Shown here: one piece after another, positions 1 to 26,620 of the stretch
Numbering within the stretch: the stretch's first letter is position 1
Layout of the letters: each line of letters begins with the position of its first letter
Assembly (NCBI GenBank): GCA_026770705.1
Contig: JANJGN010000121.1
Location: 310,001 to 374,000, forward strand
Source of the DNA: Isurus oxyrinchus
Lineage: Eukaryota
DNA length: 64,000 nt
Direction: 5' to 3'
Notes under the pieces: model-generated
What the model was told of the DNA's origin: nothing
Seen by the model: only the letters and a program-made list of their open reading frames with translations
Databases searched by the model: none
Made by a program: the position numbers and the translations under genes

Positions 1-83
1 ATTCCAAATAAATGAACCCACAATGTATTTACCCAATTCCGTATCAGTGGCTGGTGCCTTTATATCATTATAAAAACACAACA

Positions 84-2270: not shown

Positions 2271-3259
2271 CCTCTTGTTCCCTGTCCTTCTCAAAGATCC
2301 ATCCCTGCAGCAGGAGCCTGAAGAGTTACTGATGTGGGGCTTAATTTATCAGATTGTAGAATGATCCGGAACAGAAGGATGCCATTTGGCCCATCGAGCC
2401 TGTGCTGGGCCTTTGAAAGATCTGTCCAATTAGTCCCTCTTTCACCTCTGCTCTCTCCTCCACAGCCCTGCAAAATGTCACCTTCAAGTATTTATCCAGT
2501 TCCCCTTCTGAAAGTTCCTGTTGAATCTGCTTCCACCGGCCTTTCAGGCAGTGAGTCAATGGTCTCTCTCTGAGCTGCAAAGTGCTAATGTTCTGAGAAC
2601 TTTAAACTCTGCAGCAGATCAGAGACAATTATGATAACTCAGAATATTTGACAGTTTTACACACAGACAGCTTTGCCTTCCTTCTCTCTTTCAGTTATCT
2701 TGCTCCCTTATTGAAGTATCTAGCAAGGTGAGAATGGACAGGAAGTGTGACTCTGAACAGCCTGTCTATTCTAGGAGCTGTTGTGTTGACTTCATGGGAA
2801 GTCCTGACTTAGATCAGCAAAAGACACAAAATTTCAGGGCATTGTTATCCGTGTCCCAGCATCAGGATAGACTTCGTCCCCCAGTTGGTGTTCCTGATTC
2901 TCTATGCAGCCGATTGCTCCCCTGTCACTGGCTGAACTACACTGGCTCCCAGTCCAGCAATGACTCAAATTTCAAATTCTCATCATCGATTTCTTACCCC
3001 ACCATCCCCCCTCTACACTCCCGATCCCTGTAACCTCCTCCAACCCTAAAACCCTCTGAGATCTCTGCTCTCCTCCAATTCTGCTGTCAGACAGGGAGTC
3101 AGTGTATTTCAGTGAGCACAGCGGTGATGGGTGAATGGGACTTGGTGTGCGTTTGTACACTGGCTCACTGCTGAATCAGTTCCCAATCAGAGCTCAATAA
3201 GAATGATCTTTTACAAAGACTATTAGCCATAAACCTGTCCGAGCTGACGATGTTATTAC

Positions 3260-3299
3260 CTTGGAGAAGTGACAGGAGGAAGTAGGATTTCCCGATCAT
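3260..3299 (-). CDS. Signal-peptide exon (MIGKSYFLLSLLQ) of Siglec-like gene E, whose body lies left of the window
   Basis: ATG at 3299, 13 codons plus 1 nt, then G|gtaata donor. The whole exon is 3260-3341 with a tttctctttcag acceptor. It matches four other leader copies. Confidence 0.8.
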
Positions 3300-3372
3300 A
3301 GTCCACTCCCAAATATTTCATAAGCTTCTGACTCTCAAACTCTGAAAGAGAAAGGAGTTAATGAGACCTCAC

Positions 3373-3890
3373 CTCTTGTCCGACAGCTCTCGAGAGATCA
3401 GAACTGTTTTTGGACAATGTCTTGACAGACTAATTTGATTCTCTGTGGGATGATAGGTGCTCTGCAGAGAGTTACAAGGCTTTAAGAAAGAAAAATATTG
3501 AAGGATTTGCATTTCTATAGCACCTTTCAACACCTCAAGACGTCCCAAAGCTCATGTCTCTGCACTTCCCTCATCCCTTGAGCTAGAAAGATGTTCTGTA
3601 CAACAGACTTGAGTCTCACACCCAGATCTCAATAACCAGTAGAAATCTTTCAAAGGCATCAATCATTGGAATCTGTCTTTATAAAGTCACAACATCAACA
3701 AAGGACGGTGTTGGTGGTGGAAGTGAATTCCAATCGTTCTGTTACTTACCCAGGACCTGTCCGACTGCTCGCCTGGGGAGGAACTGCCCACACGCTCTGC
3801 TTGAGCTGAATGACCTCTTCCTGTGCTGCTCCCTCTGTGTGTTTAATTAGAAAGGGTGGATGTGTCACTGTGAGACAAAATGAGGAAGTG
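3373..3890 (-). promoter_or_regulatory. 5'UTR/promoter module of gene E: UTR exons 3750-3867 and 3373-3461, PU.1/ETS-like AAAATGAGGAAGTG at 3877-3890
   Basis: Canonical ag/gtaagt and ag/gtgagg boundaries. The same module precedes every leader exon in the window. Confidence 0.6.
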
Positions 3891-4104
3891 GGTAATCAGT
3901 GAGAAGATCGAGGATGTTTTGTGCTCTCAGCAAAACGTTTACCATGTGATGATCTGTCAGCTCATATTTGGGCAGCTGTAGTCATGAAGCTTCTCCATTG
4001 GCTCCGTGGGATTAGACTCCTGCCCCTCACCTCGGAGGCTGAAACTCAGGCGATAAGAGTTCCCAATACAGGTCTCTGGCCTTATGATACATTTCAACGA
4101 TCCC

Positions 4105-5830
4105 TGTTATCATTACGGAGGGAGTGCTGCACTGTCAGCGGCACTGTACTGTGGGAGTGCTGCACTATCAGAGGGTCAGTAATGTGGGAGGGCTGCACTG
4201 TCAGAGGGTCAGTAATGTGGGAGTGCTGCACTGTCAGAGGGTCAGTAATGTGGGAGGGCTGCACTGTCAGAGAGTCAGTAATGTGGGAGTGCTGCAACAT
4301 CAGAGGTTCAGTAATGAGGGAGTGCTGCACTGTCAGAGGGTCAGTAATGAGGGAGTGCTGCACTGTCAGAGGGTCAGTAATGTGGGAGGGCTGCACTGTC
4401 AGAGGGTCAGTAATGTGGGAGTGCTGAACTGTCGGCGGGTCTGTACTGAGTGGGTTCCACACAGTTGGAGGGTCAGTATTGAGGGGGTGCCGGACTGTGG
4501 GAGGGTTAGTACTGAGGTAGAGTGGAGTGTGAGGAGATATCCTTTCATGGCAGAGTTTAACTGGAATTTATTTAAACACAATTCTTGTACTGTGTGTTAT
4601 TGCAAAAGAAAGGATTTGAGGAACTAAGTCTTGTTCCCATAAGCCTAAAAATAATTTTCACGGATTTCAATGATTTAGCATTGAAACCTCCCTCTTTGGG
4701 CGCCAGTCTTGATTGAAACAACTCGCACAGCACAGTGGGAGGGTGAGTACTGAGGGAGTGCTGCACTGTGGGAAGGTGAGTACTGAGCGCGGGCTGCACT
4801 GTGGGAGTGTGAGTACTGAGGGAGTGCTGCACTGTGGGAGAGTGAGTACTGAGGGAGTGCTGCACTGTCAGAGGATCAGTAATGAGGGAGTGCTGCACTG
4901 TCAGAGGGTCAGTAATGTGGGAGGGCTGCACTGTCAGAGGGTCAGTAATGTGGGGGTGCCGGACTGTGGGAGGGTTAGTACTGAGGTAGAGCGGAGCGTG
5001 AGGAGATATCCTTTCATGGCAAAGTTTAACTGGAATTTATTTAAACAGAGATTCTTGTACTGTGTGTTATTGCTAAAGAAAGGATTTGAGGAACTAAGTC
5101 TTGTTCCCGTAAGCCTAAAAATAATTTTCACCGATTCAATGATTTAGCAATGAAACCTCCCTCTTGGGGCACCAGTCTTGATTGAAACAACTCGCACAGC
5201 ACTTCGGGAGAGTGAGTACTGAGGGAGTGCTGCACTGTGGGAGGGTGAGTCCTGAGGGAGTACTGCACTGTGGGAGGGTGAGAATTGAGGGAGTGCTGCA
5301 CTGTGGGAGGGGGAGTACTGAGGGAGTGCTGCACTGTGGGAGGGGGAGTACTGAGGGAGGGCTGCACTGTGGGAGGGGGAGTACTGAGGGAGGGCTGCAC
5401 TGTGGGAGGGTGTGTACAGAGGGAGGGCTGCACTGTGGGAGGGTGAGAATTGAGGGAGTGCTGCACTGTGGGAGCGTCAGTACTGAGGGAGTGCTGCACT
5501 GTCAGAGAGTCTGTACCGCGGGAGTGCTGAACTGTCGGAAGGTCAGTAGTGAGGGAGGGATACAGTATCAGAGGATCAGTACTGAGGGAATGCTGCACTG
5601 TGGGTGAGTGAGTACTGAGGGAGTGCTGCACTGCCAGATTGTCATCCATGAGGGAGTGCTGCACTGTCAGAAGGTCAGTGCTGACGGGGTGCTGCACTTG
5701 AAAAGGGTCAATAATGAGGTAGTGCAGCACTGTCAGAGGGACAGTAATGAGGGAGCGCTGCACTGACGGAGGGTCAGCACTGAGGAAATGCTGCACTGTC
5801 AGTTCTGAGCGTGGTCTGCACTGTCCTAAG
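4105..5830. repeat. About 33-nt minisatellite (GGGAGTGCTGCACTGTCAGAGGGTCAGTA(C/A)TGA) interrupted by two copies of a ~215-bp cassette
   Basis: Tandem units visible directly. The cassette ...gagatatcctttcatggc...aactcgcacagcac occurs at ~4520-4730 and ~4985-5200. Confidence 0.9.
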
Positions 5831-6469: not shown

Positions 6470-7100
6470 TGATGGGAGTCCGCTTGGAAATTGCTGTTTG
6501 TGCTGATGGAAAGAATAAGCTTTTCATAAATCGAGGGATTGAGAACAAACACAGGGAGGTTATGCTGAACATTTATAAAGCTCTGCTTAGGTCACAACTA
6601 GAGTATTGTGTCCAGTTCTGGTCTCCTCACTTTGGGAAGGAAGTGAGGGTCCTTGAGAGGGTGGGGAGGAGATTGAGCAGAATGGGTCCAGGGATGAGGG
6701 ATTTTAGCTACAAGGTTGGGTTGGAGAAGCTGGGGTTGTTCTCCTTGGAGCAAAGGAGATTGAGGGGGGATCTGATCGAGGTGTACAAGATGATGATGGG
6801 TTTAGATAAGGTAGACAAAGAGAAGCTGTTGCCATTAGCTGATGGGACAAGGACTGGGGGACACAGATTGAAGGTTTTGGGCAGAGGGGGGATGTGAGGA
6901 GGAACTTTTTTACACAGCGAGTGGTAATGAGCTGGAACTCGCTGCCTACGAGGATGGTGGAAGTGGAGACGATGAACGATTTCAAAAGGAAATTGGTTGG
7001 ACACTTGAGAGGAAATAAACTTGCAGGGATACGGGGATAGAGCGGGGGAATGGGACTGACTGGATTGCTCTACAGAGAGACAGCATGGAGTCGATGGGCT
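6470..7100 (+). mobile_element. CR1 LINE 3' fragment (RT C-terminus and 3' end)
   Basis: ORF 6472-6897 contains YKALLRSQLEYCVQFWSPH...LEKLGLFSLEQRRLRGDLIEVYK, a typical CR1 ORF2 end. Confidence 0.9.
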
Positions 7101-7242
7101 GAATGGGCTCCCAGTCTGCTGGAATGCCTCTCTGATACGAAGGTGATTCTAACCAGGACACTGACCAGTTTCATTACAACTTAACCCAATATCACACGTT
7201 ATTTGTCCGCACTGACTGACCAGATTGTTGCTGTACAAAGCT

Positions 7243-7382
7243 TCAAACAGTCTGTCGACTTCCTTTCACTGTTTGTCTCTCCCAGGCACAGACTCCAGCG
7301 ATAGTGATAACCACAGCCACAAGGAATATCACAGCTCGTATTCCCAGGATCAGGATCACGTGCAGAATCTCTCCTCCACTGT
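7243..7382 (-). CDS. Gene A TM/terminal exon SGGEILHVILILGIRAVIFLVAVVITIAGVCAWERQTVKGSRQTV*, with Arg in the TM and no Tyr motif
   Basis: ttctgtgtgttctctag acceptor, phase 1, hydrophobic run. CGA (Arg) at 7336-7338, TGA at 7243-7245. Confidence 0.8.
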
Positions 7383-9060
7383 CTAGAGAACACACAGAAA
7401 GAAATCATCACTGACTCTCCGCTTTCAATCTCTCACTCTGGCTGAACAATCAAGCTTCATATCACTGCAACATTTGCTGTAATATTGACCCATCCACTGG
7501 GATTCAATGTGGAATGAATGTTTTCATTGTAAACACTCGAAGAGTGGACAATTGGAACTTTCCCCTTAGCGTGGAACATTGGTGAGAATGGATCATTGTG
7601 CTGTTGGACTCCCTGTCCAATGTTTCTCTCCATCGCTGTGTACAGGATTGTGCTGTGGAAAATTCTGGAAACGTTTTGTGCAGGGTGGAAATTCATCTCG
7701 GACGTGTGTGCGAATCGGACAGGATCGAGATGGACTCCCCCACGGACTTACACCCCCCGCTTAATAAACAGTTCCAATCTTTACCCAGAGAGAGGGGAGA
7801 ATGTGGAACTCGCTCCCACAGGGAGTGGTTGAGGTGAACAGTATCGATGTATTTAAGGGGCAGGAGGGTCGGTAACCAGAGGGACACAGATTGACGAACC
7901 GGAGGGGGAGATGAGGAGAATTTGTTTTGACAGAGCGAGTTGTTGTGATCTGGAAGGTGCTGCCTGAAAGGGTGGTGGAAGCAGATTCAATAGGAACTTT
8001 CAAAAGGGAAATTGGATAAATACTTAAAGTAGGAAGATGGGGGCAAAGTGGAGTGGTGGTTAGTGGATCTGATTGGATAGAACATTGAAAGACCTGGCAC
8101 AGGCACAATGGACTGAATGGCCTCCTCCTGTGCTGTATCATTCTCCGTTTCCATGATCTCTCCCCCAGTCAGTAACGACTCCAGATCCCTCTTGAAGGCG
8201 ACAGAGAATCAGCAACCACCACACCCACTGACAACACATTGCCGAGGATCCCTACTCTCTGGGAAAAGATGAACTCCCCAACATCCAGCCTATTCCTGCT
8301 TCCCAGAGAGTGTAAACCCTTCAGGGAGGCGCTGAGGAAGTTTTCAATAAAATGACATCAAATCTACCGTTTGAGAAATAATTGAATTCCAATGAACTCA
8401 CAGCTTGTGTAGCAAACTGGGAAGTGGAGTTGCTTGAAAAGCTGGGAAACACAAGGATTAAGGGCTACAATGCCACCACTGGTGGGAGGCTGTAACTACA
8501 GCGTGACGTTTACATAGGCAATCCCCATTATGAACAAGGACATTGGACATCATGTGAAATATGGGCACTGGAAAGGTGAGAACATGATGTAAGCTTTTCA
8601 CCAACAGGAATTCTCCTCCTAAACCTCTCCACCTCTCTCTTACTCTCAAATACACAAAGAAAATCACACAAATCAGATAAGGAGGATTTGGGACCGGTGA
8701 TTGTTCGAAGGGTGAGCTTTCAGGAAGCTTCTTAAAGGGAGAGAGAGAGTTGGAGAGGCAGAGAGTATCTGTGAGAGTCTCTATGCATCTGAGTGTCTGT
8801 AATAGACTTTGTAATTTCCATATTCTTGCATAAATATGAATGGGAACACAAATCCCAGAATTCAGGCCAACTCTCCAGGGCAGTACTGAGGGAGGTCAGG
8901 TAGCCCACAGAGGAGTGTGTGTTAGTGTGTTTGTGTGTGAGTGTGTCTTTCTGTGTGGTCATATATGTGTGTCTGCATGTGTCTACTTAGATGTGTATGT
9001 TTGAGGGTGTTTGTGTAGTGTTCGAATCTGAGAGAGATGTTGAAGTCTGTGTACACTCAC

Positions 9061-9214
9061 GTTCCACAGTGATGGTTATGAATCCCTCCACTGCTCCATG
9101 TTCATTCTCTGCCACACACTGATAGTCTCCAGTGTCCCTGGATGTAACGTGAGGAATCACAAACCACAGCTCATTGTTGGAACTTGTTCTGTTCATTGGG
9201 ACATTAAGATGTCA
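9061..9214 (-). pseudogene. Gene A decapitated second C2 exon (3' half only, HLNVPMNRT...GFITITVE)
   Basis: Matches the 3' half of the gene C C2 repeats and keeps a C|gtgagt donor. The 5' half is replaced by unrelated sequence with an in-frame TGA at the junction. Confidence 0.8.
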
Positions 9215-9536
9215 GGGAGGGAATCAAGAACCCCGTTCACAGGATTACCAACAGAAAGTGAACAACAATTTATACTTAATGGGAAGAGAGTGCTGATTGG
9301 TTGGCAATTGGTCTCTGATAGGTGGCGGTGTTGCCATGGAGAATGGTGTGTGCGAGATGTAAAGTTTAGACAGCTTGTCTCTTTATTCAGCAATAATCAT
9401 ATAAAGATCAATTAACTTCTATCGACTTTGAAGCACTTAGAGAGGCCTTAGAATGTGGATACTGAGAATGGGCTGCACTGTCAGAGGGTCAGCGCTGAGG
9501 GAGTGCTGATGTGGAATGAATGGTGCATGTAATTAC

Positions 9537-9833
9537 CTTGCACAGTTAGTACGAGGGTCCGCTCCGATGAAACAGATGGATATCTCACTCTGCAGCTGAG
9601 AGTGTGTCCGTGGTGTTTGAGTGATGGGATCAGGGTCAGAACAGAAGTATAGGTCAGAGTGACACCATGCTGAGTTACAGTGTTTGAGACTGATCCAGGT
9701 ACGTCAGTGGGAGTGTCCCAGGTTAAGACAGGTGCTGCTGTTCCATTGCACGTTGTGTTGAAGGTGCAGCTCACATCCACACGCTTTCCTGCAATAATTT
9801 CAGCAGGGAATATCGTGGGTTTATCTGTGAAAT
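9537..9833 (-). CDS. Gene A C2-set Ig exon (Siglec domain 2) DFTDKPTIFPAEIIAGKRVDVSCTFNTTC...SCRVRYPSVSSERTLVLTVQ
   Basis: 297 nt, phase 1-1, tag/gtaatt boundaries. It has the extra B-C loop Cys used for the Siglec V-C2 interdomain disulfide. Confidence 0.9.
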
Positions 9834-10646
9834 CTAACAGACAGAGAATGGATCCTTTTAGAGAAATATAACATGAAGCATCAGTTCAAATAGAAAGCAC
9901 AGTCCCACAAGAGAAAGCACTTTTACAAGGATGATATCAGATCTGAGAGGATACAATGATCAGGAGAGAATTTCCTATTTTCAGACTTAGTGGAGTTTCT
10001 GTCACTCAGATGAATTCACTTCCACTTTGAGACAATTGAATTGACAATCCCAGGTGAGGGCGGGGGAGCAGCTCACAGTTCCTGACACAGTGGCTTGTTA
10101 CTTTCTCCGAAATCTGCCAGATTTAAATTCTATCCTGTCGCCAGCAGGAGAGAATCCATTTGAACCAATCACTGAACCGGCATCTAAAGCAGATGATCAG
10201 GTTATTGATCACATTGCTGTTTCTGGGAGCTTCCTGTGCACAAATTGGCTGCTGTGTGTCCTATATTACAACAAGGGCTACATTTCAAGAATTATTTCAA
10301 TGGTTGTGAATCCATTTGCGACATCCAGATGTGGTGAAAGGTGCTATAGAAATGCAAATCTTTCTTTTGTTGATATGTAAGAATTTTAAACAGGATTAGG
10401 TAGACTGATGGGAGTGGATAACCTGATAACATTGATGGACACAGTCAATACATTTAATCATTGATATTAAAGTGAGTATTAGAGGTTGTTTTAGGACTGA
10501 ACTGGAAGCTATTAGCAGGTTATTGAGAATCAGACAGTGTGTTATAATAAGCTGTGTTTTGTGTTAATATGTAAATGTCACAGTTCGTGTTATTTCCCAT
10601 TGAGTGTTGAATGTGAGTTGTTGAGTAATTATAACACAGCACTTAC

Positions 10647-11015
10647 CAGAAACGTGAAGCTGGGTTACAGGGTAATAGTTATGGCTCGGACCATTGTCAA
10701 ATTCTATTCTGAAAAAATAAGGTCCTGCATCTTCCCGTCTGATGTTGTTTATAATCAGGGAACAGTCGCCATCTTTCAGGTTTCCAGACAGCCGGGTCCG
10801 ATTGTGGAACCGTGGTAACTCGTGACTGTGATCCTTGGAGTGAAAGGCAATGGGAGCCCAGGGAATCTGTTCCTCATTATTAAACCAGACTCCACCTCGC
10901 GGTTGGTTTTCCAGACACGATGGATAACTGTAATGACATGGAATCTGTACACACGAACTTTCCTGTGCTGTCACCTCTCGTGGATTGTCACCTTTCCACT
11001 CTTGTGAGGGTTCAG
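10647..11015 (-). CDS. Gene A V-set exon V2 (essential Arg intact, extra Cys)
   Basis: 369 nt, phase 1-1. Siglec hallmarks: QEW, CVQIPC, DGDCSL, DAGPYFFRIE (no F-strand Cys, Arg AGA at 10708-10710). Confidence 0.92.
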
Positions 11016-11079
11016 CTGGGGAGAGAAATCTCAATATTGAACTCTGGATGGTTTGTGGATCCACTAGACTCAAAATTTA

Positions 11080-11900
11080 CTGATGAGGCTGAATTGGGGG
11101 GATGGTCAATACTGAGGAAAATGGCAACAAATTATTTTGGCAGGAAGAATAGAAAAACAGGATATTATTTAAATGGAGACAGGATGCAGAATGCAGTACA
11201 GAGGGATCTGGGTGTCCTTGTACATGAATCACAGAAAGTCAGCATTCAGGAACACCACGGAATGAGGAAGGCAAGTGGAATGTTGGCCTTTATTGCAAAG
11301 GGATGGAGTATAAAAGGAGGGAAGTCTTGCAACAGCTGCACAGGGTGAGATTGTATCAGGAGCAGTGTGTACAGTTCTAGTCTCCTTACTTAGGGAGGGA
11401 TAGACTTGCATTGAAGGCAGTTCAGAGAAGCTTCACTGGGCTGATTCCTGGGATTAAAGGGTTTGTCCTGTGAGGAAATGTTGAGCAGGTTGGGCCTGTA
11501 TCCATTGGAGTTTAGAAGAATGAGGGGTGAGCTTATTGAAACATATCCGATTCCGAGGGGGCTTGACAGGGTGGATGCTGGGAGGATGTTTCCCCCTCGT
11601 GGGGGAATCTAGAACCAGGGAGCACAGTTTCGGAATGAGGGCTCTCCCATTTAAGACTGAGATGAGGAGGAATTTCCTCTCTCAGAGGGGCGCTAGCCTG
11701 TGGAATTCTCTTCCCCAGAGAGCAGTGGAGGCTGGGCCATTGAATAGACTCAAGGCTGAGTGAGGCAGGTTTTTGATCGACAAGGGAGTCAAGGGTTTGG
11801 GGAACAGGCAGGAAAATGGAGTTAAGGCCACAACCAGATCAGTGAGAGCAGGCTGGAGGGGCCGAATGGCCTGCTCCTGTCCCTATTTCTTATGTTCCTA
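11080..11900 (+). mobile_element. CR1 LINE fragment
   Basis: YYLNGDRMQNAVQRDLGVLVHESQKV and RRNFLSQR segments, followed by a CR1-like 3' tail. Confidence 0.85.
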
Positions 11901-11989
11901 CATTCTTACCTTCTTAAAATATTAAAGCTGCAGAATAAACATGCAAGTGACTGACCCGCTCGACCCACCTTCCATCAGTGGCTGGAGGA

Positions 11990-13110
11990 GGTTACACAGA
12001 TAGGGAGGTTTGTGGGGGCTGTAGGAGGTAACAGAGATAGGGAGGGCTGTAGATACTGGAGGAGGTTACGCAGATAGGGAGGGTGGTAGGACCTGGAGGA
12101 GGTTGCGGAGATAGGGAGGGCTGTAGGGATTTGAGGAGTTTATGGAGATGGGGAGCGTGTAGGGACTGGAGGAGGCTGCAAGGGCAGAGAGGGTTTTAGG
12201 GGCAGGAGGAGTTTACAGGGATAGGAAGAGTTGTAGGGGCTGGACGGATTGCAGAGGTAGGGAGGGTTGGAAAGGCTGGTGGAGGTTTCAGAGGTAGGGA
12301 AGGTTGCAGGGACTGGAGGAGTTTACAGAGATGGGGGAGTTTTTGGGGCAGGATGGGGTTACAGAGATAGGGAGGGTTGTAGGGGCAGGACGAGGTTACA
12401 TAGATATGGAGTGTGGCTGGGGCTGAGGGAGGCTACAGAGATAGGGAGGGTTATAATGGCTGGAGGAGGTTACAGAGATAATGGAAGCTTTTAGGGACTG
12501 GAGGAGGTTACAGAGATAGGGAGGGTTGTAGTGGGCTGGATGAGGTGACAGAAATATGAAGGGTTGTAAGAGATGGAGCAGCTTACAGAGATTGGGAGAG
12601 GTATTCGGTCTGGAGGAGGTTGCAGAGATAGGGGAGGTTGTTAGGACTGAAGGAGGCTACAAATATCGCGAGGGTTATCAGGGCTTGAGGAGGTTAAAGA
12701 GATAGGGAGGGGTGTTGGGTCCGGAGGAGTTTGCAGTGATAGGATTGGTTTTCGGGATTGGAAGAAGGTACTGAGATAGGAGGGTTGTAGAGACTGGAGG
12801 AGTCTCCTGAGATAGGGAGGGTTGTAGGGACTGGAGGAGGCTCCTGAGATAGGGAGGGTTGTAGGGACTGGAGGAGGCTCCTGAGATAGGGAGGGTTGTA
12901 GGGACTGGAAGAGGCTCCTGAGATAGGGAGGGTTGTAGGGACTGGAGGAGGCTCCTGAAATAGGGAGGGTTGTAGGGACTGGAGGAGGCTCCTGAGATAG
13001 GGAGGGTTGTAGGGACTGGAGGAGGCTCCTGAAATAGGGAGGGTTGTAGGGACTGGAGGAGGCTCCTGAGATAGGGAGGGTTGTAGGGACAGGAGGAGAC
13101 TCCTGAGATA
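11990..13110. repeat. About 31-32 nt purine-rich minisatellite (GGGAGGGTTGTAGGGACTGGAGGAGGCTCCTGAGATA)
   Basis: Near-perfect units at 12770-13110, degenerate units leftward. Confidence 0.9.
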
Positions 13111-13139
13111 GGGAATGTTGCCGTGGATGAAGGAAGAGG

Positions 13140-14100
13140 AGGAGATTACTGTAATAGGGAGGAAAAATATTCAAAAATTGTGGCATTGAGACTTTGCTTG
13201 ACCAGGAACCAGTCTCGGGACTTGGTGTGAGTAAGGACGTGGTCAGCAGTTTTGGATGGCCTCAAGTTTATGGAGTGTAGAGCGTGTGTTGGAACAGTCG
13301 AGACTGGAGGTAATGAAGGCGTGGATGAGGGTTTCAGCAGCAGATGAGCTGAGACAGGGTGACATCGTACAATGTTTCGGAGGTGGAAATAGACGGTGTT
13401 AGTGAGGGCGCAGATATGAGGCCGGAAGCTCATCTCAGGATCAAATGGGACAACAAAGCTGTGAACAGATTGGCTTCAATCTCAGAGAGCTGCCAGGGAG
13501 AGGAATGGAGTTGGTAGCGAGGGAACAGAGTTTGGAATGGGGAATGAAGACAATGGCTTCAGTCTTTCCAATATTTAATTGGAGGGAATTTCTGCCCATC
13601 CAGTACTGGATGTCGGATAAGCAGCCTGATAATTTAGCAGCAGTGGCGGAGTCGAGAGAGGTGGTGGTGAGGTAGAGCTGGGGATCCTCAGTGGACAGGT
13701 GAAAACTAACACTGTTCAGATGATGCTGCAAAGCCATTGCAAGTGATTCTCTGGCTACGATGAGATGGATAAGAATGGAGCCAGGGGAGAGCAGTCCCAC
13801 CCAGCTGGACGACAGTGGACAGGTGTTGGAGGAGGATGGTGTGGTCGAGTGTGTCAAAGGCTGCAGACAGATCGAGAAGGACGAGGAGGGAAAGTTGACC
13901 TTTGTCACAGTCACACAGGATGCCATTTGTGACCTTGATAGGAGCTGTTTCAGCACAGTGGCTGGGGTGGGAACCTGATTGGAGGGATTCAAACATGGAG
14001 TTCCGGGAAAGATGGGAACGGATTCGGGAGATGGAAACACGTTCAAGGACTTTGGAGGGGAAAGAGAGGCTGGAGATGGGACGGGGGTTTACACGGACAG
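13140..14100 (-). mobile_element. L2-clade LINE RT fragment
   Basis: ORF 13706-14140 contains RPISSLSFPSKVLER...LVLLDLSAAFDTLDHTILL. A second frame contains LQLNIGKTEAIVF. Confidence 0.85.
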
Positions 14101-14360
14101 TGTGAGGGGTGAAAGGTGTAGTGGGGAGGAGATACTTCACTCAGGGGGGAGGTGTCATCACCCCTCAGCTCGGTTTACGTTACAGCTATGATGTGGATTC
14201 AATCACACACAATAAGCTCATGGATCTGGGAGCAGAAATAGACAAATCATTAAAAATAGTGACGCTGGTTAACATGGCCAAAAAACAAGCAAATCAAACA
14301 CTATTATTTCCCATTGAGTGTTGGATGTGAATTGTTGAGTAATTATAACACAGCACTTAC

Positions 14361-14738
14361 CAGAAACCTGAAGCTGGGTTACAGGGTAATAGTTATGGCT
14401 TGGACGATTGCCAAATTTTATCGTGAAAAAATAAGGTCCTGCATCTTCCCGTCTGATGTTGTTTATAATCAGGGAACAGTCGCCATCTTTCAGGTCTCCA
14501 GACAGCCGGGTCCGATGGCGGAACCGTGGTAACTCGTGACTGTGACCCTTGGAGTGAAAGGCTATAGACCATTTAGACCATTTGTTCCGTATGTAGCTTC
14601 TCATTTTCCAGATTCCGACATGTGGTTTCTTTACCAAATCTGATGGATAACTGTAATGACATGGAATCTGTACACACGAACCTTTCTGCGCTGTCACCTC
14701 TCGTGGAGTGTCACCTTTCCACTCTTGTGACAATCCAA
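14361..14738 (-). CDS. Gene A V-set exon V1 (essential Arg replaced by Thr, YFFTIKF)
   Basis: 378 nt, phase 1-1, tttctctccccag/gtaagt boundaries, open frame, Siglec Cys pattern. ACG at 14422-14424. Confidence 0.9.
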
Positions 14739-15054
14739 CTGGGGAGAGAAATATCAATATTTAACTCTGGATGTTTTGTTGATCCACAAGATTCATTATC
14801 CACCCCCTCCATCACTCGGGCACAGTGGCTGCAGTGTGGACCATCTACAGGACACACAATGAACTCCACAAGGTATCACACCGGATGGAAGAGAATCCTG
14901 GACACAAAAGCGGAAAAGTTCATTCTACATTGGTTCATGGTCCTCAGGACCCTGTTTGTGCAGAAGTCTGCTCTCCAACAGAACTGAAGTTGGGGACAAT
15001 GCATTTGGAATTCCACTGTCCTGGGCATTGGGTTAACTTGCTGATTTTGTTTTG

Positions 15055-15782
15055 CCTAAAGCAAAATAGGCTTGTGAGAAGCCAGAAGATCCTAGGAGAC
15101 ACCACAGGTTGGTGACTCATTACTACGGCCATGTGAAGCCATGGTGTTCCATTGACACGGCTGAGCATTGGAGAGACAGGGCGTGGAAGGAAGGCTGAAT
15201 GCACGTGGCGATCCAGGGGGCAGGAACATGGGAAGGAGAGTTTGAAATAGTGAAAGTGGACCCTTCTGGAAGGTGTCTGAGTGAAAGTGTCATGTTGGAG
15301 GAGATTCCAAAGTGAGTTCTTGGAGAGTGGAGATTGGAAACTCTCATATGAAAGAAGCTTTTCAGTGAGACTGGTTGGCTCACAGTGTAACAAGCGTCTG
15401 GGGACAGATGAGACATAGATATTGTTTCAAGTGGGCTCTGCCACTTGCTTTCAGGTCCCTGACCACAGGTCGTCTATTGGTTTATATCGACTGTGCACTT
15501 AGTGTGAACATGAGAATATAAGATAGTTATTGTAACTTGTGTTCTACTTATGAATCTGCAAAGGTATAGATCTGGGTGAAGGTGTAATGTAATATAGTTT
15601 GTCTTTCCTAGTTTAATAAATGTTTTATTCTTTTGTTAGAAGATCATCAGATGACTCCTGTGACTCTGTTCAGTAGCCGCACTCCACATTCCTAAATAAA
15701 AAATAAAAGTTAGGACCTATCAAGCTGAGTTCCACCCTGGGATCTGACTTGCCCAGTAGTAACATCAGCTGGGATGATAACA
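15055..15782 (+). mobile_element. Truncated copy of the LTR-like element at 27937-29184
   Basis: Direct similarity to 28430-29184, ending ...gggatgataaca. Confidence 0.5.
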
Positions 15783-15973
15783 CCATCCAGTCCAAGTTTC
15801 ACTTTGGCCTGTGAGCAGAACACAGCTCACACAGTTTGGCCGCAGGTGTTTCCCAGCTTTCTATCCTTGTATATCTGTTCTCATGTCCCTGTTCTAAATA
15901 ACTGAACCCACAATGTATTTACCCAATTCCATATCAGTGGCTGGTGCCTTTATATCATTATAAAAACACAACA

Positions 15974-18160
15974 TGGTGGTCAGCGGTGGCCAAACATTCT
16001 GGCAGCAAGATTCAGTACAGGTATGACATGGTGAACAGCCTTAGATCGAATTACATGGCATGAGACGACCCTCGACGCTTTGGTCAGACCACAACAGAGA
16101 CACAGCATCAGAGAGGGTTGAAATCGCAGTGTACTGACTGCTCAGGAATCCTTCGAAGACACAGTGACGGGAAAGAGCTCAAGTAAAGAGCTGGGGAGCA
16201 GACGGATCCCTCGTGGTGAGATTACAGCACACGGCCTGTAGGTCAGTGAGTGGGACAATGTGTATCGCCAGGACCAGCAGCGGGTTAGCTCAGTCAGGGA
16301 AGGCGAGTGACCAGGGTGTGGGCTGGATCGATAGTGAGCGAGGGAGATTCAAACACACAAAAACCATTATAAAAATCAGCCCAGAGAAGTTAGTGATTAT
16401 AACGGGCGGCTTTGAGATTGATGAACAGCAAATTGAATAAAAAACAAAGACTCCATTACTCCGTGGTGTGTTCCTGCCACAACCCGTCTCCGTGGGCGGA
16501 GCTTCAGAAAAGCGCACAAAAGGGGCTAAAGCGACACTCATCCCAGGTCCTGTAGAAGAAGGAACGTCAAAGGAATATTGTCAGAATGTCCACGAAATTC
16601 CCCAGTTTGAACTGGGATGTAGCTGACCGACTATCTGAATTCAGAATGTTTAAACAGCGTACAGAGCTCTGGTTTCCTGATTCAGGTGTGACTGAACCAG
16701 ACGAGCCACCCATAAAAATTCACCTCGCGATTGGGAATGAAGGTCTACACAGGCTGAACACGTCAGGATTAACAGCAGAAGAGCGAAAGGATCCCCAATA
16801 GATATGGACGACATTGGAAGACAGGTTCAGAATCAGGTGAAACTCCATATTCATCAACTAGAGTTTATGTCATTTCATCAGCCTACACAATCCATAGACC
16901 ACTTCATCAGCCGATGTAGAGAAAAGGGTACGCACTGTGATTTCAAACACAGAGCCTGCAGACACAGTTGTTGAGTTGGTGATCACATCCACTCCCATGG
17001 AAGCCTTCCAGAAAGATCTGCTAGATAAGACCAAAACCTATAGCATTGAAGAGTTACTCTAGGATGGACATAAATACGAAGTGATCCTCGCAGGTCAACG
17101 AAGCTTATAGGTCCTCAGTACAACATCAATTGTTGGCACACTCACTAGAACATCCAAACCTAGTGAGACGTGTGGAAGGTGTGGCCTTCTGCGGACACCA
17201 AGGAAATGCCCAGCTTTCCACCAATCCTGCAAGGCTTGTGGCAGAAAGGGCCATTGACAGCGGCAGGGCACTAGAGCAAAGGCTGATGCAGCTACAAAGA
17301 GCCGTGCGCTGATCCAAACAAACCCTGCACAACGGGGAACCTTCAAGCAATAAGAATGACCATCCGCTATCCCATCAGGAACATATACATGTGGTGACTG
17401 ACAAACCAGGAAATGGCGATGATGTGCATGACGAGACTAGGAGCGGTGATCGATATTCCACCTCTCACACATATCCTGACGTGGCTTGCCAATAAATTGT
17501 GGATTGTGGTCTTTATTGATCTCTCTGGGCACATCAAATAAACTGAAAATGTTCCCATAGGGGTGGGATTTTCTGGCCCCACCCACTTCCATGATTGTCC
17601 GGTCCGGCCGAAAACCAATGGATTTACGTCTGTCCCAGTCTCAGAAACTATCCCATCAGCTCAGTGCATGACATAACATTGAAATATGCAGAAAGATTCA
17701 ACAATATTGGCAGTTTCAAGGGAGCTGCAACATTACACCTGCAGGAGAATGCAAGTCTGTCAGACTCCTTGCATTAAAATTAATACAATCCAACTTTGCC
17801 ACGCGATATTGAGCCTGAAATGGCCAATAATTTCTATGCCTTCCAGGTTCATTTGCTCTCTCTTCTAATTTTGGCTGTGCATCTCTCTCTGTTGAACCTC
17901 CTCTCGGGATCCCATCCCCTGCCATTTTAGTTTAAAGCCTCCTCAATTGCATCAAGGGTGTAATGTCAATTGAAACCAGGGACAACATCGAAGAATGACA
18001 ATCCCACAGATCAATGTGAGCAATTAAAGAAACCTCCAGACAACTTTGCCACCACAAGATCTCGACATAACAGCAGATTACCTCTACGCTTTAGAGACTC
18101 AAATATTCAACAGATCTATACACTTATGTAATTGTCAAGAAATATGAAAATGATACCAGG
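15974..18160 (+). mobile_element. Gypsy internal remnant, copy 2 (gene A leader-V1 intron)
   Basis: Colinear duplicate of 84-2270. PBS-like TGGTGGTCAGCGGTGG at 15974, gag ORF 16586-16801. Confidence 0.75.
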
Positions 18161-19148
18161 AACCTCTTGTTCCCTGTCCTTCTCAAAGATCCATCCCTGC
18201 AGCAGGAGCCTGAAGAGTTACTGATGTGGGGCTTAATTTATCAGATTGTAGAATGATCCGGAACAGAAGGATGCCATTTGGCCCATCGAGCCTGTGCTGG
18301 GCCTTTGAAAGATCTGTCCAATTAGTCCCACTCTAACCTCTGCTCTCTCCTCCACAGCCCTGCAAAATGTCCCCTTCAAGTATTTATCTAGTTCCCCTTC
18401 TGAAAGTTCCTGTTGAATCTGCTTCCACCGCCCTTTCAGGCAGTGAGTCAATGGTCTCTCTCTGAGCTGCAAAGTGCTAATGTTCTGAGAAGTTTAAACT
18501 CTGCAGCAGGTCAGAAACAATCATGATGACTCAGAATATTTGACAGTTTTACACACAGACAGCTTTGCCTTCCTTCTCTCTTTCAGTTATCTTGCTCCCT
18601 TATTGAAGTATCTAGCATGGTGAGAATGGACAGGAAGTGTGACACTGAACAGCCTGTCTATTCTAGGAGCTGCTGTGTTGTCTTCATGGGAAATTCTGAC
18701 AAAATCAGCAAAAGACACAAAATTTCAGGGCCTTGTTATCCGAGTCCCAGCATCAGGATAGACCTCATTCCCCAGTTGGTATTCCTGATTCTCTATTCAG
18801 CTGATTGCTCCCCTGTCACTGGCTGAACTACACTGGCTCTCAGTCCAGCAATGACTCAAATTTCAAATTCTCATCATAGATTTCTTACCCCACCATCCCC
18901 CCTCTACACTCTCTATCTCTGTAACCTCCTCCAACCCTAAAACCCTCTGTGATCTCTGCTCTCCTCCAATTCTGCTGTCAGACAGGGAGTCACTGTATAT
19001 CAGTGAGCACAGGGGTGATGGGTGAATGGGACTTGGTGTGAGTTTGTACACTGGCTCACTGCTGAATCGGTTCCCAATCACACTCAATAAGAATGATCTT
19101 TTACAAAGACTATTAGCCATAAACTGTCCGAGCTGACGATGTTATTAC

Positions 19149-19188
19149 CTTGGAGAAGTGACAGGAGGAAGTAGGATTTCCCGATCAT
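19149..19188 (-). CDS. Gene A signal-peptide exon MIGKSYFLLSLLQ
   Basis: ATG at 19188 and G|gtaata donor. Phase 1 joins V1 to give ...LLQVGLS-QEW. Confidence 0.85.
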
Positions 19189-19259
19189 TGTCCACTCCCA
19201 GATATTTCATAAGCTTCTGACTCTCAAACTCTGAAAGAGAAAGGAGTTAATGAGACCTC

Positions 19260-19779
19260 ATCTCTTGTCCGACAGCTCTCAAGAGATCAGAACTGTTTTT
19301 GGACAATGTCTTGACAGACTAATTTGATTCTCTGTGGGATGATAGGTGCTCTGCAGAGAGTTTCAAGGCTTTAAGAAAGAAAAACATTGAAGGATTTGCA
19401 TTTCTATAGCACCTTTCACCACCTCAAGACATCCCAAAGCTCATGTCTCTGCACTTCCCTCATCCCTTGAGCTAGAAAGATGTTCTGTACAACAGACTTG
19501 AGTCTCACACCCAGATCTCAATAACCAGTAGAAATCTTTCAAAGGCATCAATCATTGGAATCTGTCTTTATAAAGTCACAACATCAACAAAGGACGGTGT
19601 TGGTCGTGGAAGTGAATTCCAATTGTTCCGTTACTTACCCAGGACATGTCCGACTGCTCGCCTGGGGAGGAACTGCCCACACGCTCTGCTTGGGCTGAAT
19701 GACCTCTTCCTGTGCTGCTCCCTCTGTGTGTTTAATTAGAAAGGGTGGATGTGTCACTGTGAGACAAAATGAGGAAGTG
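19260..19779 (-). promoter_or_regulatory. Gene A 5'UTR/promoter module (exon 19639-19756, PU.1-like site 19766-19779, second UTR exon with donor GT>AT at ~19261)
   Basis: Homologous to 3373-3890. acctcaTctc here versus acctcaCctc in the other copies. Confidence 0.6.
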
Positions 19780-20004
19780 GGTAACCAGTGAGAAGATCGA
19801 GGATGTTTTGTGCTCTCAGCAAAACGTTTACCATGTGATGATCTGTCAGCTCATATTTGGGCAGCTGTAGTCATCAAGCTTCTCCATTGGCTCCGTGGGA
19901 TTAGACTCCTCCCCCTCACCTCGGAGGCTGAAACTCAGGCGATAAGAGTTCCCAATACTGGTCTCTGGCCTTATGATACATTTCAACGATCCCTGTTATC
20001 ATTA

Positions 20005-21810
20005 AGGAGGGAGTGCTGCACTGTCAGTGGGACTGTACTGTGGGAGGGCTGCACTATCAGAGGGTCAGTACTGAGGGAGTCTGCACTGTCAGAGTGTCAG
20101 TACTGAGGGAGTGCTGCACTGTCAGCGGCACTGTACTGTGGGAGGGCTGCACTATCAGAGGGTCAGTAATGTGGGAGGTCTGCACTGTCAGAGGGTCAGT
20201 ACTGTGGGAGTGCTGCAACATCAGAGGGTCAGTAATGAGGGAGTGCTGCACTATCAGAGTGTAAGTAATGTGGGAGTGCTGAATTGTCGGAGGGTCTGTA
20301 CTGAGTGAGTTCCGCACAGTTGGAGGGTCAGTATTGAGGAGGTGCCGGACTGTGGGAGGGTTAGTACTGAGGTAGAGTGGAGTGTGAGGATATATCCTTT
20401 CATGGCAAAGTTTAACTGGAATATATTTAAACACAATTCTTGTACTGTGTGTTATTGCAAAAGAAAGGATTTGAGGAACTAAGTCTTGTTCCCGTAAGCC
20501 TAAAAATAATTTTCACAGATTTCAATGATTTAGCATTAAAACCTGCCTCTTTGGGCGAAAGTCTTGATTGAAACAACTCGCACAGCACAGTGGGAGGGTG
20601 AGTACTGAGGGAGTGCTGCACTGTGGGAGGGTGAGTACTGAGGGAGTGCTGCACTGTGGGAGGGTGAGTACTGAGGGAGTGCTGCACAGTGGGAGGGTGA
20701 GTACTGAGGGAGTGCTGCACTGTCAGAGGTTCAGTAATGAGGGAGTGCTGCACTGTCAGAGGGTCAGTAATGTCGGAGGGCTGCACTGTCAGAGGCTCAG
20801 TAATGTGGGAGGGCTGCACTGTCAGAGGGTCAGTAATGTGGGAGGTCTGCACTGTCAGATGGTCAGTAATGAGGGAGTGCTGCACTGTCAGAGGGTCAGT
20901 AATGTGGGAGGGCTGCACTGTTAGAGGGTCACTAATGTGGGAGTGCTGCACTGTCGGAGGGTCTGTACTGAGTGAGTTCCGCACAATTGGAGGGTCAGTA
21001 TTGAGAGTGTGCCGGACTGTGGGAGGGTTAGTACTGAGGTAGAGCGGAGCGTGAGGAGATATCCTTTCATGGCAAAGTTTAACTGGAATTTATTTAAAAA
21101 GAGATTCTTGTACTGTGTGTTATTGCAAAAGAAAGGATTTGAGGACCTAAGTCTTGTTCGCGTAAGCCTAAAAATAATTTTCACGGATTTCAATGATTTA
21201 GCAATGAAACCTCCCTCTTTGGGCACCAGGCTTGATTGAAACAACTCGCACAGCACTTCGGGAGAGTGAGTACTGAGGGAGGGCTGCACTGTGGGAGGGT
21301 GTGTACAGAGGGAGGGCTGCACTGTGGGAGGGTGAGAAGTGAGGGAGTGCTGCACTGTGGGAGCGTCAGTACTGAGGGAGTGCTGAACTGTCGGAAGGTC
21401 AGTAGTGAGGGAGGGATACAGTGTCAGAGGGTCACAACTGAGGGAATGCTGCACTGTCAGTTTGTCAGCACTGTGGGAGTGCTGCACAGTCAGAAGGTGT
21501 GTACCGAGGGAGTGCCAAACTGTCAGAAGGTCAGTAGTGAGGGAGGGATACAGTATCAGAGGATCAGTACTGAGGGAATGCTGCACTGTGGGTGAGTGAG
21601 TACTGAGGGAGTGCTGCACTGTCAGATTGTCATCCATGAGGGAGTGCTGCACTGTCAGAAGGTCAGTGCTGACGGGGTGCTGCACTTGAAAAGGGTCAAT
21701 AATGAGGTAGTGCAGCACTGTCAGAGGGACAGTAATGAGGGAGCACTGCACTGACGGAGGGTCAGCACTGAGGAAACGCTGCACTGTCAGTTCTGAGCGT
21801 GGTCTGCACT
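20005..21810. repeat. 33-nt minisatellite with two ~215-bp cassettes (duplicate of 4105-5830)
   Basis: Same unit and cassettes, different unit counts. Confidence 0.9.
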
Positions 21811-23133: not shown

Positions 23134-23273
23134 TTAAACAGTCTGTCGACTTCCTTTCACTGTTTGTCTCTCCCAGACACAGACTCCAGCGATAGTGATA
23201 ACCACAGCCACAAGGAATATCACAGCTCGTATTCCCAGGATCAGGATCACGTGCAGAATCTCTCCTCCACTGT
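23134..23273 (-). CDS. Gene B TM/terminal exon with TM Arg and tail WERQTVKGSRQTV*
   Basis: 140 nt like gene A. CGA at 23227-23229, TAA at 23134-23136. Confidence 0.75.
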
Positions 23274-24393
23274 CTAGAGAACACACAGAAAGAAATCATC
23301 ACTGACTCTCCGCTTTCAATCTCTCACTCTGGCTGAACAATCAAGCTTCATATCACTGCAACATTTGCTGTAATATTGACCCATCCACTGGGATTCAATG
23401 TGGAATGAATGTTTTCATTGTAAACACTCTAAGAGTGGACAATCGGAACTTTCCCCTTAGCGTGGAACATTGGTGAGAATGGATCATTGTGCTGTTTGAC
23501 TCCCTGTCCAATGTTTCTCTCCATCGCTGTGTACAGGATTGTGCTGTAGAAAATTCTGGAAACGTTTAGTGCAGGGTGGAAATCCATCTCGGACGCGTGT
23601 GCGAATCGGGCAGGATCGAGATGGACTCCCTCACGGACTTACACCCCCCGCTTAATAAACAGTTCCAATCTTTACCCAGAGAGAGGGGAGAATGTGGAAC
23701 TCGCTCCCACTGGGAGTGGTTGAGGTGAATAGTAGCAAATTAGGAAGGGAAATTGCTTGAAAAGCTTGGAGATGCAAGGGATAAATGCTACCGTGCCACC
23801 ACTGGTGGGAGAGTGTAACTACAGCGTGATGTTTACATAGGCAATCCCCATTATGAACAAGGACATTGGACATCATGTGAAAAATGGGCACTGGAAAGCT
23901 GAGAACATGATGTAAGCTTTTCACCAACAGGAATTCCCTTCCTAAACCTCTCCACTTCCCTCTTATTCTCAGATACTCAAACAAAATTTCACACAAAATC
24001 ACGTAAGAGGTTTTAGGACAGGTGACTGGTCAAAGGATTAGGTTTCAGGAAACTTCTTAAAGGAGGATAGAGAGTTGGAGAGGCAGAGAGTATCTGTGAG
24101 TATCTCTGTGCATCTGAGTGTCTGTAATAGACTTTGCAATTTCCATATTCTTCCATAAATATGAAAGGGAACACAAAACCCAGAATCTAGGTCAATACTC
24201 CGGTGCAGCACTGAGGGAGGTCAGGTAACCCACAGGGCAGATTGTGATAGTGTGTTTGTTTGTGAGTGTGTCTTTGTGTGTGCTCATACATGTGGGATTG
24301 TGTGTCTGCAGGTGTCTGCTTAGGTCTGTATATTTGTTTGTATTTGTGTAGTGTTTGAACCTGAGAGTGATGTTGAAGTCTGTGTACACTCAC

Positions 24394-24546
24394 GTTCCAC
24401 AGTGATGGTTATGGACACCTCCACTGCTCCATGTTCATTCTCTGCCACACATTGATAGTCTCCAGTGTCCCTGGATGTAATGTGAGGAATCACCAACCAC
24501 AGCTCATTGTTGGAACTTGTTCTGTTCATTGTGATATTGAGATGTC
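24394..24546 (-). pseudogene. Gene B decapitated second C2 exon
   Basis: Same breakpoint (ccTGACATCT) and same replacing sequence as at 9214. Confidence 0.8.
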
Positions 24547-24870
24547 AGGGCAGGACTCAACAAGACAGCTCGCAGGTTTACCAACAGAAAATGAACAACA
24601 ATTTATATTTAAAGGGAAGAGAGTGCTGATTGGTTGGCAAGTGGTCTCTGATGAGAGGAGGTGTTGCCATGGAAAATAACGTGTGCAAGCTGTAAAGTTT
24701 AGACAGCTTGTCCCTTCATTCAGCAATAATCAATTAAAGATCAGTTAACTTCTATCGACTGTGAAGCAAATTTGAGTGGCCTGAGAATATGGATACTGAG
24801 AACGGGCTGCACTGTCAGAGGGTCTGCGCTGAGGGAGTGCTGATGTAGAATGAAGGGTGTCCGTACTTAC

Positions 24871-25167
24871 CTTGCACAGTTAGTACGAGGGTCCGCTCCG
24901 ATGAAACAGATGGATATCTCACTCTGCAGCTGAGATTGTGTCCATGGTGTTTGAGTGATGGGATCAGGGTCAGAACAGAAGTATAGGTCAGAGTGACACC
25001 ATGCTGAGTTACAGTGTTTGAGACTGATCCAGGTACGTCAGTGGGAATGTCCCAGGTTAAGACAGGTGCTGCTGTTCCATTGCACGTTGTGTTGAAGGTG
25101 CAGCTTACATCCACACGCTTTCCTGCAATAATTTCAGCAGGGAATATCGTGGGTTTATCTGTGAAAT
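24871..25167 (-). CDS. Gene B C2-set exon (domain 2)
   Basis: 297 nt, phase 1-1, nearly identical to 9537-9833. Confidence 0.85.
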
Positions 25168-25809
25168 CTAACAGACAGGGAATGGATCCTTTTAGAGAAA
25201 TATAACGTGAAGCATCAGTTCAAATAGAAATCACAGCCCCACAAGAGAAAGCACTTTTACAAGGATGATATCAGATCTGAGAGGTTACAATGATCAGGAG
25301 AGAATTTCCTGCTTTGAGACTTTGGTGTTTCTCTCTCTCAGCTTAATATACGTTCACTCCGAGAAACTTGAACTGATAATAGTGGGTGAGGGTGGAGGAG
25401 CAGACCAGAGTTTGGAGTGCACTACCCCATCATTCACTCAGCGATATGGGCCATTTGTTACTTGTCAATTTGTGGGAGCTTGCTGTGCGCAAATTGGTTG
25501 CTGTGTTTCCCACATTACAACAGTAACTACAATTCAGGAATCAGCTCATTGGCTGTGAAGTGATTTGGTCCGTGCTGAGGTGGTGAAAGGTGCTACAGAA
25601 ATGTGAATCATTCTTCTGTCGATATGTCAGACTTCGAGACAGGATTAGAGAGATTGATGGGAGTGGATAAGCTGATAACATTGATGGACACAGTCAATAC
25701 ATTTAATCATTGATATTAAACGTGATTATTAGAGTTTGCTTTTGGACTGAACTGGAAGCTATCACCAGGTTACCAGGTTGCATGTTAACTCAAAATTAAG
25801 AATCTAAAT

Positions 25810-26620
25810 GGTCTAGAGGAGCATAGAACAATAGATTATATTTATATAGTGCCTATATTGTAATATAACATGCCAAGGTGCTCCACAGGAGCATTATAAT
25901 AGAAAGTATGGTCCCACGCCATATAAGGAGATATTAGGTCAGATAATCAGAACTTTGGTTGAAGAGGTGGGTTTTAAGGAGCACCTTAAAGGAGGAGATA
26001 GAAAGATGAAAGGATTTAAGTCTCAGGACCCAGGCTACTGAAGGCTTGGCCGTCCATGCTGGAGCGATGGAAATCAGGGATGCTGAAGAGTCCAGAGGTA
26101 GAGGAGTGCAGAAATCTGGGAAGGCTGTAGCACAGGAGGAGATTACAGAGATAGAGAGGAAGCAAGGACAAGCATTTTGAAATCAAGACATTGCTTGTCC
26201 AGGAGCCATTCAAGGTCAGAGAGTCGAGGGGGGGATAGGGGAACGTGAGTTACTGCTGGTTAAAACAGGGGCAGCTGAGTTTTAGATGACCCCAAGTTTA
26301 CAGAGGGTGGAATGTGCGAGACCAGCCAGGAGTGAGTTGGAATAACCGAACGGGATGAGATGAGATGGAGATTGAGATCTCCGAGGATGGGAATTCAGTC
26401 GGTGCAGAGACTGAGGGAGGAAAGCAGTGAAGATATCCTGGGGCGAAGATGTTTATCATTCCTGGAGTGATCGGCGATAGAGAACGAGAAGTTAGAAGGA
26501 GAGATGAGAGGGGTGGAACACTGTGAGATATTCAAAGGAGGAGAAAGTGCCAGAGGAGGTGGGGGTGGGGGTCAAGCCAAGGTGTGATTTGGTGATAAGC
26601 TCCGCACTGTCACCAGGTCA
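25810..26620 (-). mobile_element. Degenerate L2-like LINE fragment
   Basis: ORF 26016-26213 (SSTSGLFSIP...GQAFSSLGP) resembles the L2 ORF2 C-terminus, and the region resembles 13140-13450. Confidence 0.55.

Follow-up and report, generated by a model that had tools for sequence, protein, structure and literature searches.

If a single leader precedes two V-set exons in a Siglec-like gene, does the encoded receptor carry both domains, or does splicing choose between them? The question is raised by gene A, which lies on the minus strand of a 64,000-nucleotide stretch of DNA from Isurus oxyrinchus (GenBank assembly GCA_026770705.1, contig JANJGN010000121.1, positions 310,001 to 374,000), hereafter the window, in which all positions given below are counted. 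An earlier note on this DNA had offered two readings of the arrangement, a convergent V-V-C2 receptor or cassette, possibly mutually exclusive, V exons. It had also held that Siglec-12 alone among mammalian Siglecs has two V-set domains, in agreement with the literature, where no mammalian Siglec other than Siglec-12 is described as having a pair of V-set domains at its N terminus (PMC6288428). The main product of gene A is most likely a type I receptor of 407 amino acids, built as signal peptide, first V-set (V1), second V-set (V2), C2-set and a transmembrane (TM) segment that contains an arginine (Arg), and we consider it probable that V1 and V2 are included together in the main form. From the comparisons presented here, the V-V-C2 receptor appears better supported than a choice between cassette exons.

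Gene A and its predicted product

Read along the minus strand, gene A has the order leader-V1-V2-C2-TM(Arg)-short tail, with a conceptual product of 407 amino acids. Its parts are as follows (nt, nucleotides).

19149-19188, minus strand: leader exon, with ATG and 13 codons plus 1 base (MIGKSYFLLSLLQ plus one base), ending in the phase-1 donor AAG/gtaata
14361-14738, minus strand: V1, the first V-set exon, 378 nt, phase 1-1, with threonine (Thr) at the Arg site (FFTIKF) and a longer C-C′ loop
11016-14360, minus strand: V1-V2 intron, 3345 nt, holding neither a leader nor any further coding module
10647-11015, minus strand: V2, the second V-set exon, 369 nt, phase 1-1, with the Siglec Arg (YFFRIEF) and a fourth cysteine (SYPSC) in the B-C loop
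9537-9833, minus strand: C2-set exon, 297 nt (Pfam C2-set_2, E 2e-09), carrying the additional cysteine (NTTC) characteristic of Siglec domain 2
9062-9211, minus strand: remnant of a second C2-set exon, with the 3′ half and donor kept, the acceptor and first half replaced
7243-7382, minus strand: last coding exon, with the stalk, a TM helix with Arg (ILGIRAVIF), a 12-residue tail and the stop

V1 and V2 are each a single open frame bordered by ttctctccccag upstream and gtaagtgctg downstream, which confirms the open, phase 1-1 exons with intact splice sites described in the earlier note. Their borders are alike, with cag before the exon and gtaagt after it, and since these near-identical splice sites are strong and both exon lengths are divisible by three, double inclusion would be the default. 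Dropping either V exon retains the frame, so that leader-V1-V2-C2-TM, leader-V1-C2-TM and leader-V2-C2-TM all stay open to one common stop and encode 407, 284 and 281 amino acids, respectively. No feature of gene A that would bar double inclusion was found, be it a frame shift leading to nonsense-mediated decay, incompatible splice sites or too short an intron, the V1-V2 intron being 3345 nt long. The second C2-set exon was ruled out as a functional exon of gene A, since only its 3′ remnant is left and RNA skips it. The cytoplasmic tail has 12 residues and no tyrosine motif, and the TM segment has an Arg; we take gene A to encode a Siglec-like receptor of the activating type and not a receptor with an immunoreceptor tyrosine-based inhibitory motif (ITIM).

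The intron between V1 and V2

The earlier note had seen no leader between the two V exons and had named beforehand an unrecognised one as a finding that would undo its reading; three scans of 11016-14360 came back empty. Copies of the leader sit at 3299, 19188, 33495, 35630 and 51849, and none of these five falls within the intron; self-comparison of the window places no copy of the 1.8-kb leader/promoter block there. A scan of the intron for an ATG, an open frame, a hydrophobic core and a phase-1 GT donor gave 0 candidates (mean of 0.32 in shuffles), and the same scan picks up the true leader of gene A. A leader within the V1-V2 intron is ruled out by these three scans. The minisatellite that the same note had placed in this intron is present as well, along with material derived from mobile elements.

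11982-13114: minisatellite with a 37-bp unit, 30.7 copies
13380-13433: transposon-derived open reading frame (MSFRPHICALTNTVYFHL)
13709-14140, minus strand: reverse-transcriptase fragment of a long interspersed nuclear element (LINE; Pfam RVT_1, E 2.9e-08)

A RefSeq model of the great white shark, P0270, starts its coding sequence with a counterpart of the transposon-derived open reading frame. Use of this frame as a first exon, as in P0270, was ruled out here, as a GT donor is missing from the window at the matching site.

The V-set domains

Pfam V-set matches V1 and V2 (E 2e-11 and 6e-11), Ig_CD22 matches both, and their best relatives among solved structures are Siglec-5, Siglec-8, Siglec-7 and CD33, with MAG and sialoadhesin also found (PDB; E down to 3.7e-14). 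Judged by these matches, the V-sets of gene A belong to the Siglec type. At the sequence level, both V exons carry the three-cysteine V-set pattern SC..PC...DC and the C2-set exon has SC..TTC...SC. The two V-sets share 73% protein identity, and their mutual similarity reaches 183 bits, compared to about 56 bits to any human Siglec.

The key residues differ between the two domains. The essential arginine of strand F is kept in V2, where YFFRIE aligns with YFFRVE of Siglec-5, whereas in V1 it is replaced by Thr (FFTIKF) and its surroundings are changed (TIKFGNRP compared to RIEFDNGP). V1 keeps all fold-defining residues, namely the three cysteines, GIW and DxGxYFF. The ratio of nonsynonymous to synonymous substitution rates (dN/dS) is 0.40 for V2 against its closest paralog, and by this measure V2 is under purifying selection; for V1 the ratio is 0.59-0.88 against paralogs. 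We propose that V2, which adjoins the C2-set domain, would be the sialic-acid-binding domain, because its arginine is kept, and that V1, at the tip of the receptor and with its arginine lost in gene A, may act as an added or altered recognition domain or as a spacer.

The extra cysteine of V2 (SYPSC; codon at 10915-10917) lies seven residues past the B-strand cysteine, much like the interdomain cysteine of the C2-set domain, and could bond the interdomain cysteine of V1, which is otherwise partnerless. Among family representatives, SYPSC occurs in 17 of 26 non-first V domains, 1 of 19 first V domains and 4 of 118 single V domains. It is present in nearly all V2-type domains across sharks, and also in the great white single-V models P0268, P0272 and P0276. 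This cysteine was rejected as proof that V1 and V2 stand in one protein, since single-V models carry it too; because in these models it sits in a domain behind the leader, we treat SYPSC as a marker of the V2-type clade that hints at a V1-V2 disulfide.

Relatives in other sharks

An exhaustive profile search with V2 was used to collect relatives, those from sharks and rays being automatic RefSeq predictions, and the top matches have two to four matched V stretches each. Models with several V-sets come from catsharks, basking shark, smooth-hound, bamboo shark and stingrays, and are mostly named Siglec-12, -13, -8 or -14. By our own domain count, two to four V-sets are present in 19 of 137 family representatives (eight elasmobranch species), and the number of V-sets per elasmobranch model of the family runs from one to four.

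The closest counterparts are great white models named “Siglec-12/13” in RefSeq. From its first residue to its last, the gene A product is colinear with P0275 (404 amino acids), at 89.7% identity between residues 1-407 and 1-404, and it also aligns with P0271 (406 amino acids, 88.0%) and P0267 (88.0%). Such closeness places the DNA in a lamniform shark. These models share with gene A the leader, a V1-type domain, a V2-type domain with SYPSC, one C2-set domain, the TM segment ILGIRAVIF and the 12-residue tail, at 88-90% over 407 amino acids. They differ in coming from another species or from paralogs and in that their V1 (FFRIKF, LFRTDF) keeps the arginine that is replaced by Thr in gene A; V2 of some begins with VGLSQ instead of AEPSQ. 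The V-V architecture is consequently not new as a sequence feature, as RefSeq has already modelled it in related sharks.

A maximum-likelihood tree of 54 V domains separates the two types. The V1 clade (support 100/97) holds 11 rows, each being the leading V domain of a two-V model from great white or basking shark. The V2 clade (96/91) holds 21 rows and draws on four shark genera (great white, basking shark, bamboo shark and catsharks), with V domains mostly in second or third position. V1-type and V2-type domains are separate lineages in a kept order in great white and basking shark, with V2-type domains also in second or third place in the bamboo shark and catshark models, and all complete models with a V1-type domain in the tree continue into a V2-type domain. 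Constraining V1 and V2 to be sisters changes the log-likelihood by -41.9 units and is rejected by the approximately unbiased (AU) test (p 0.0018). A recent, private duplication of a V exon in gene A is rejected by the tree and this test, and since the V1 and V2 clades are separate and shared, the V1-V2 order was inherited. By this phylogeny, the V-V layout is old and common to related sharks, and by the domain count given above gene A is not a singular oddity. Since the similarity of V1 to V2 far exceeds that of either to human Siglecs, the layout and that of mammalian Siglec-12 very likely have independent origins. An old exon duplication probably produced the shark layout, which unequal recombination in the cluster has probably reshuffled since.

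RNA evidence

Many small sequencing runs contain 46-73% of the words sampled from V2, compared to 6-13% of those from a 5.1-kb genomic stretch, and this enrichment is a signature of spliced RNA. RNA contigs, rather than raw reads, from four runs of four studies were mapped on positions 9500-14800 (5301 letters), and 15 of 55 joints were listed. The V2-to-C2 joint (10647 to 9833), with GT..AG ends, was found in all four runs, and in these runs the intron bins have no contig cover. The C2-to-TM splice is seen in contigs that leave 9537 into 30 letters exactly equal to 7382-7353, bypassing the remnant C2-set exon. At the 5′ end of V1, a contig of run X12 (loose end at 14740) carries 13 extra letters equal to the 3′ end of the leader, as produced by the leader-to-V1 splice. 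Contigs cover the 5′ two thirds of V1 in three runs, with the last 95 nt at the 3′ end covered clearly in run X7 only. Over the 3′ half of V2, the C2-set exon and the TM exon, contigs show 0-1 differences from gene A, which apparently is an intact and transcribed member of the cluster. A search of transcript-derived protein fragments for the V1-V2 junction (query P0163:75-200) returned three single-V proteins only and was uninformative.

Joint inclusion and its alternatives

The case for joint inclusion of V1 and V2 combines the strong, identical splice sites, the neutrality of either exon to the frame, the long intron, the conserved V1-then-V2 order, the complete models from other sharks and the extra cysteine of V2. 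Several observations weigh against it. The V1-to-V2 joint (14361 to 11015) is not among the 15 of 55 joints listed, and as junk joints with a depth of about 24 are listed, a well-supported V1-to-V2 contig is probably absent from the four runs; the presence of V1 and V2 in one mRNA is thus something we infer. The gene-specific 95 nt at the 3′ end of V1 are almost uncovered in three of the four runs. One contig of run X7 joins a V1-like end straight to C2, with a depth of 47.9 compared to 68.4 for the V2-to-C2 joint; this joint is carried by 23 letters, with one base different from the V2 end, and may come from a paralog instead of from skipping of V2, because the C2-adjacent V domain of great white P0161 also ends in QLQVS. 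Contigs on the 5′ half of V2 depart from gene A at up to 4-5% of positions, and some of the RNA may hence stem from a near-identical paralog or another allele. Great white models P0268, P0272 and P0276 have a V2-type domain directly behind the leader, and the models from other sharks on which the conserved order is based are themselves automatic predictions.

Some of these points are what would be expected if V1 and V2 were cassette or alternative exons, with most mRNAs carrying one of them and splicing picking the Arg-bearing or the Arg-less domain, a reading that we regard as possible but unlikely. All three exon combinations are in frame, as such a choice would require, but nothing enforces exclusivity, given a long intron, two strong splice sites and no frame penalty. 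The V1-like-to-C2 contig of run X7 and the place of the V1-to-V2 joint outside those listed fit skipping of V2, though the 23 letters and single-base difference of the former leave P0161-like paralogs as a possible source. The single-V great white models fit skipping of V1, though no leader-to-V2 joint was seen among the joints listed. A partial great white model, P0265, joins a V1-type domain straight to C2, yet a V2-type domain follows the V1-type domain in every complete model of the tree. Between the two readings in the earlier note, the convergent V-V-C2 receptor is favoured by the colinear models (up to 89.7% identity) and by the clades, and its independence from Siglec-12 holds as very likely, while the joint inclusion of both V exons in mRNA is the part reached by inference. 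Its cassette reading keeps the single V1-like-to-C2 contig and the unlisted V1-to-V2 joint on its side, but mutual exclusivity finds no enforcement in the phases or splice sites.

A wider proposal, which at present we find doubtful, is that the number and identity of V-sets are a tuned variable in this cluster. Unequal recombination would yield V1-V2, V1-only and V1/V2-hybrid genes, and the splicing of gene A would in addition pick among V1-V2, V1-only (Arg-less) and V2-only (Arg-bearing) heads. If this were true, one activating gene would give rise to both sialic-acid-dependent and sialic-acid-independent forms of the receptor.

It is improbable, in our view, that V1 is decaying or functionless, or that gene A is silent and a near-identical neighbour is the source of the RNA, with V2-C2-TM as the working receptor. 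V1 has lost the essential arginine and changed nearby residues (TIKFGNRP for RIEFDNGP), and its dN/dS is 0.59-0.88, but raised dN/dS and loss of this arginine are common among working Siglecs, and V1 has an uninterrupted frame, undamaged splice sites and all of its fold-defining residues. Pseudogenisation does occur in the cluster, as seen from the frameshifted V exon and lost V2 of gene B (described below), and RNA contigs scarcely cover the 3′ part of V1; nevertheless, the leader-to-V1 splice was found in RNA, and contigs that fit the V2 3′ half, C2 and TM exons of gene A with 0-1 differences argue against a silent gene. That the V-V arrangement is an assembly artefact, with two tandem paralogs collapsed or mis-joined, is barely credible even in a tandem array with units 86-98% similar and a minisatellite, where assembly is difficult, since the order of V1-type then V2-type recurs in great white, basking shark and other species that were assembled independently, positions 7000-19300 of the window hold no runs of N, and colinearity is kept by the flanks of V2 with C2, as in gene C, and by those of V1 with gene B.

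The surrounding cluster

Siglec-like genes stand in a tandem array on the minus strand of the window, with units of about 15.9 kb by self-comparison; positions 2-4484 match 15892-20372 at 95.9%, and other blocks match at 86-98%. It contains four V-set exons, V1 and V2 of gene A and one each in genes B and C.

27250-26892, minus strand: V exon of gene B, frameshifted
48319-47957, minus strand: V exon of gene C

Gene B (23137-33495) has a one-base frameshift in its V exon and is missing the V2-carrying segment, having no counterpart of gene A 10522-14096; from these lesions it is probably a pseudogene. Its second C2-set exon (24395-24544) is truncated like that of gene A, the acceptor and first half being replaced by unrelated sequence.

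The single V exon of gene C (region 47700-48640) has mosaic surroundings. Its upstream intron is V1-like (74%, compared to 49% to that of V2), its downstream intron is V2-like (93.6% compared to 55%) and over its 3′ third the exon shares 99.2% identity with V2. Such flanks and 3′ third are as expected from recombination between V1 and V2, and the exon has the look of a V1/V2 recombinant. Gene C also holds four to five tandem copies of its second C2-set exon (42101-46546) with a period of about 1.1 kb; all are open, with 82-87% identity to a Mustelus C2 domain.

45787-45509, minus strand: second C2-set exon copy
44757-44479, minus strand: second C2-set exon copy
43632-43354, minus strand: second C2-set exon copy
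42379-42101, minus strand: second C2-set exon copy
46546-46460, minus strand: partial copy beside an N gap

An orphan fifth leader copy (35589-35630) has 2 mismatches and lacks a neighbouring V exon to go with it. A TM segment and a cytoplasmic tail of ITIM type are encoded by exons at 55789-61647, the last two of them duplicated (60593/57501 and 58952/56058); these exons belong to another minus-strand gene, with its V exons past the end of the window. These neighbouring tail exons (55.8-61.6 kb) fit paired activating and inhibitory receptors. In such a pairing, the TM arginine of gene A would couple the receptor to an ITAM-bearing adaptor (ITAM: immunoreceptor tyrosine-based activation motif), and gene A may be the activating partner of ITIM-bearing paralogs.

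Comparison with known Siglecs and significance

Primate Siglec-12 (human Siglec-XII) resembles gene A in its two V-sets and in that one of these may lack the essential arginine (R122C in humans). Siglec-12 signals through ITIMs and has more C2 domains than gene A. The shark gene is no ortholog of it, as the clades of V1 and V2 contain sharks only and the likeness of both domains to human Siglecs is distant, and it differs further in having a TM arginine, one C2-set domain and no ITIM, with the Arg-less domain being the distal one in the reference sequence. With the activating Siglecs that are paired with inhibitory ones (Siglec-14/5, Siglec-16/11 and Siglec-15), gene A shares a basic TM residue and a very short tail. 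Near-identical ectodomains in ITIM-bearing neighbours are a further likeness, as with great white P0275 compared to P0161. The paired mammalian activating Siglecs have a single V-set instead of the two in gene A, and pairing with an adaptor in the shark is putative.

Within the same family, a catshark model with three V-sets (XP_038670873, P0001) and a stingray model with four (XP_059815055, P0003) also place serial V-set exons before the C2-set exon. In P0001, the second and third V-sets fall in the V2-type clade, and the model differs from gene A by its additional V-set and an ITIM tail. P0003 likewise has more V-sets, and its domains are much more diverged, some with lysine or serine at the Arg site.

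Fish have been described as regularly having only Siglec-1, CD22, MAG and Siglec-15, with CD33-related Siglecs lacking in fish genomes (PMC7226832). Literature of this kind is teleost-centred, and the Siglec family of sharks is under-described; our literature search found no papers on Siglecs of sharks, rays or other cartilaginous fish with several V-sets. Sharks carry a rapidly reshuffled CD33-like cluster, apparently with paired activating and inhibitory members, in which serial V-sets are common and old. Because gene A is apparently intact and places an Arg-less distal V-set before an Arg-bearing one, it is a convenient natural case for studying what a second V-set contributes to a Siglec, whether reach, avidity, masking or a second specificity.

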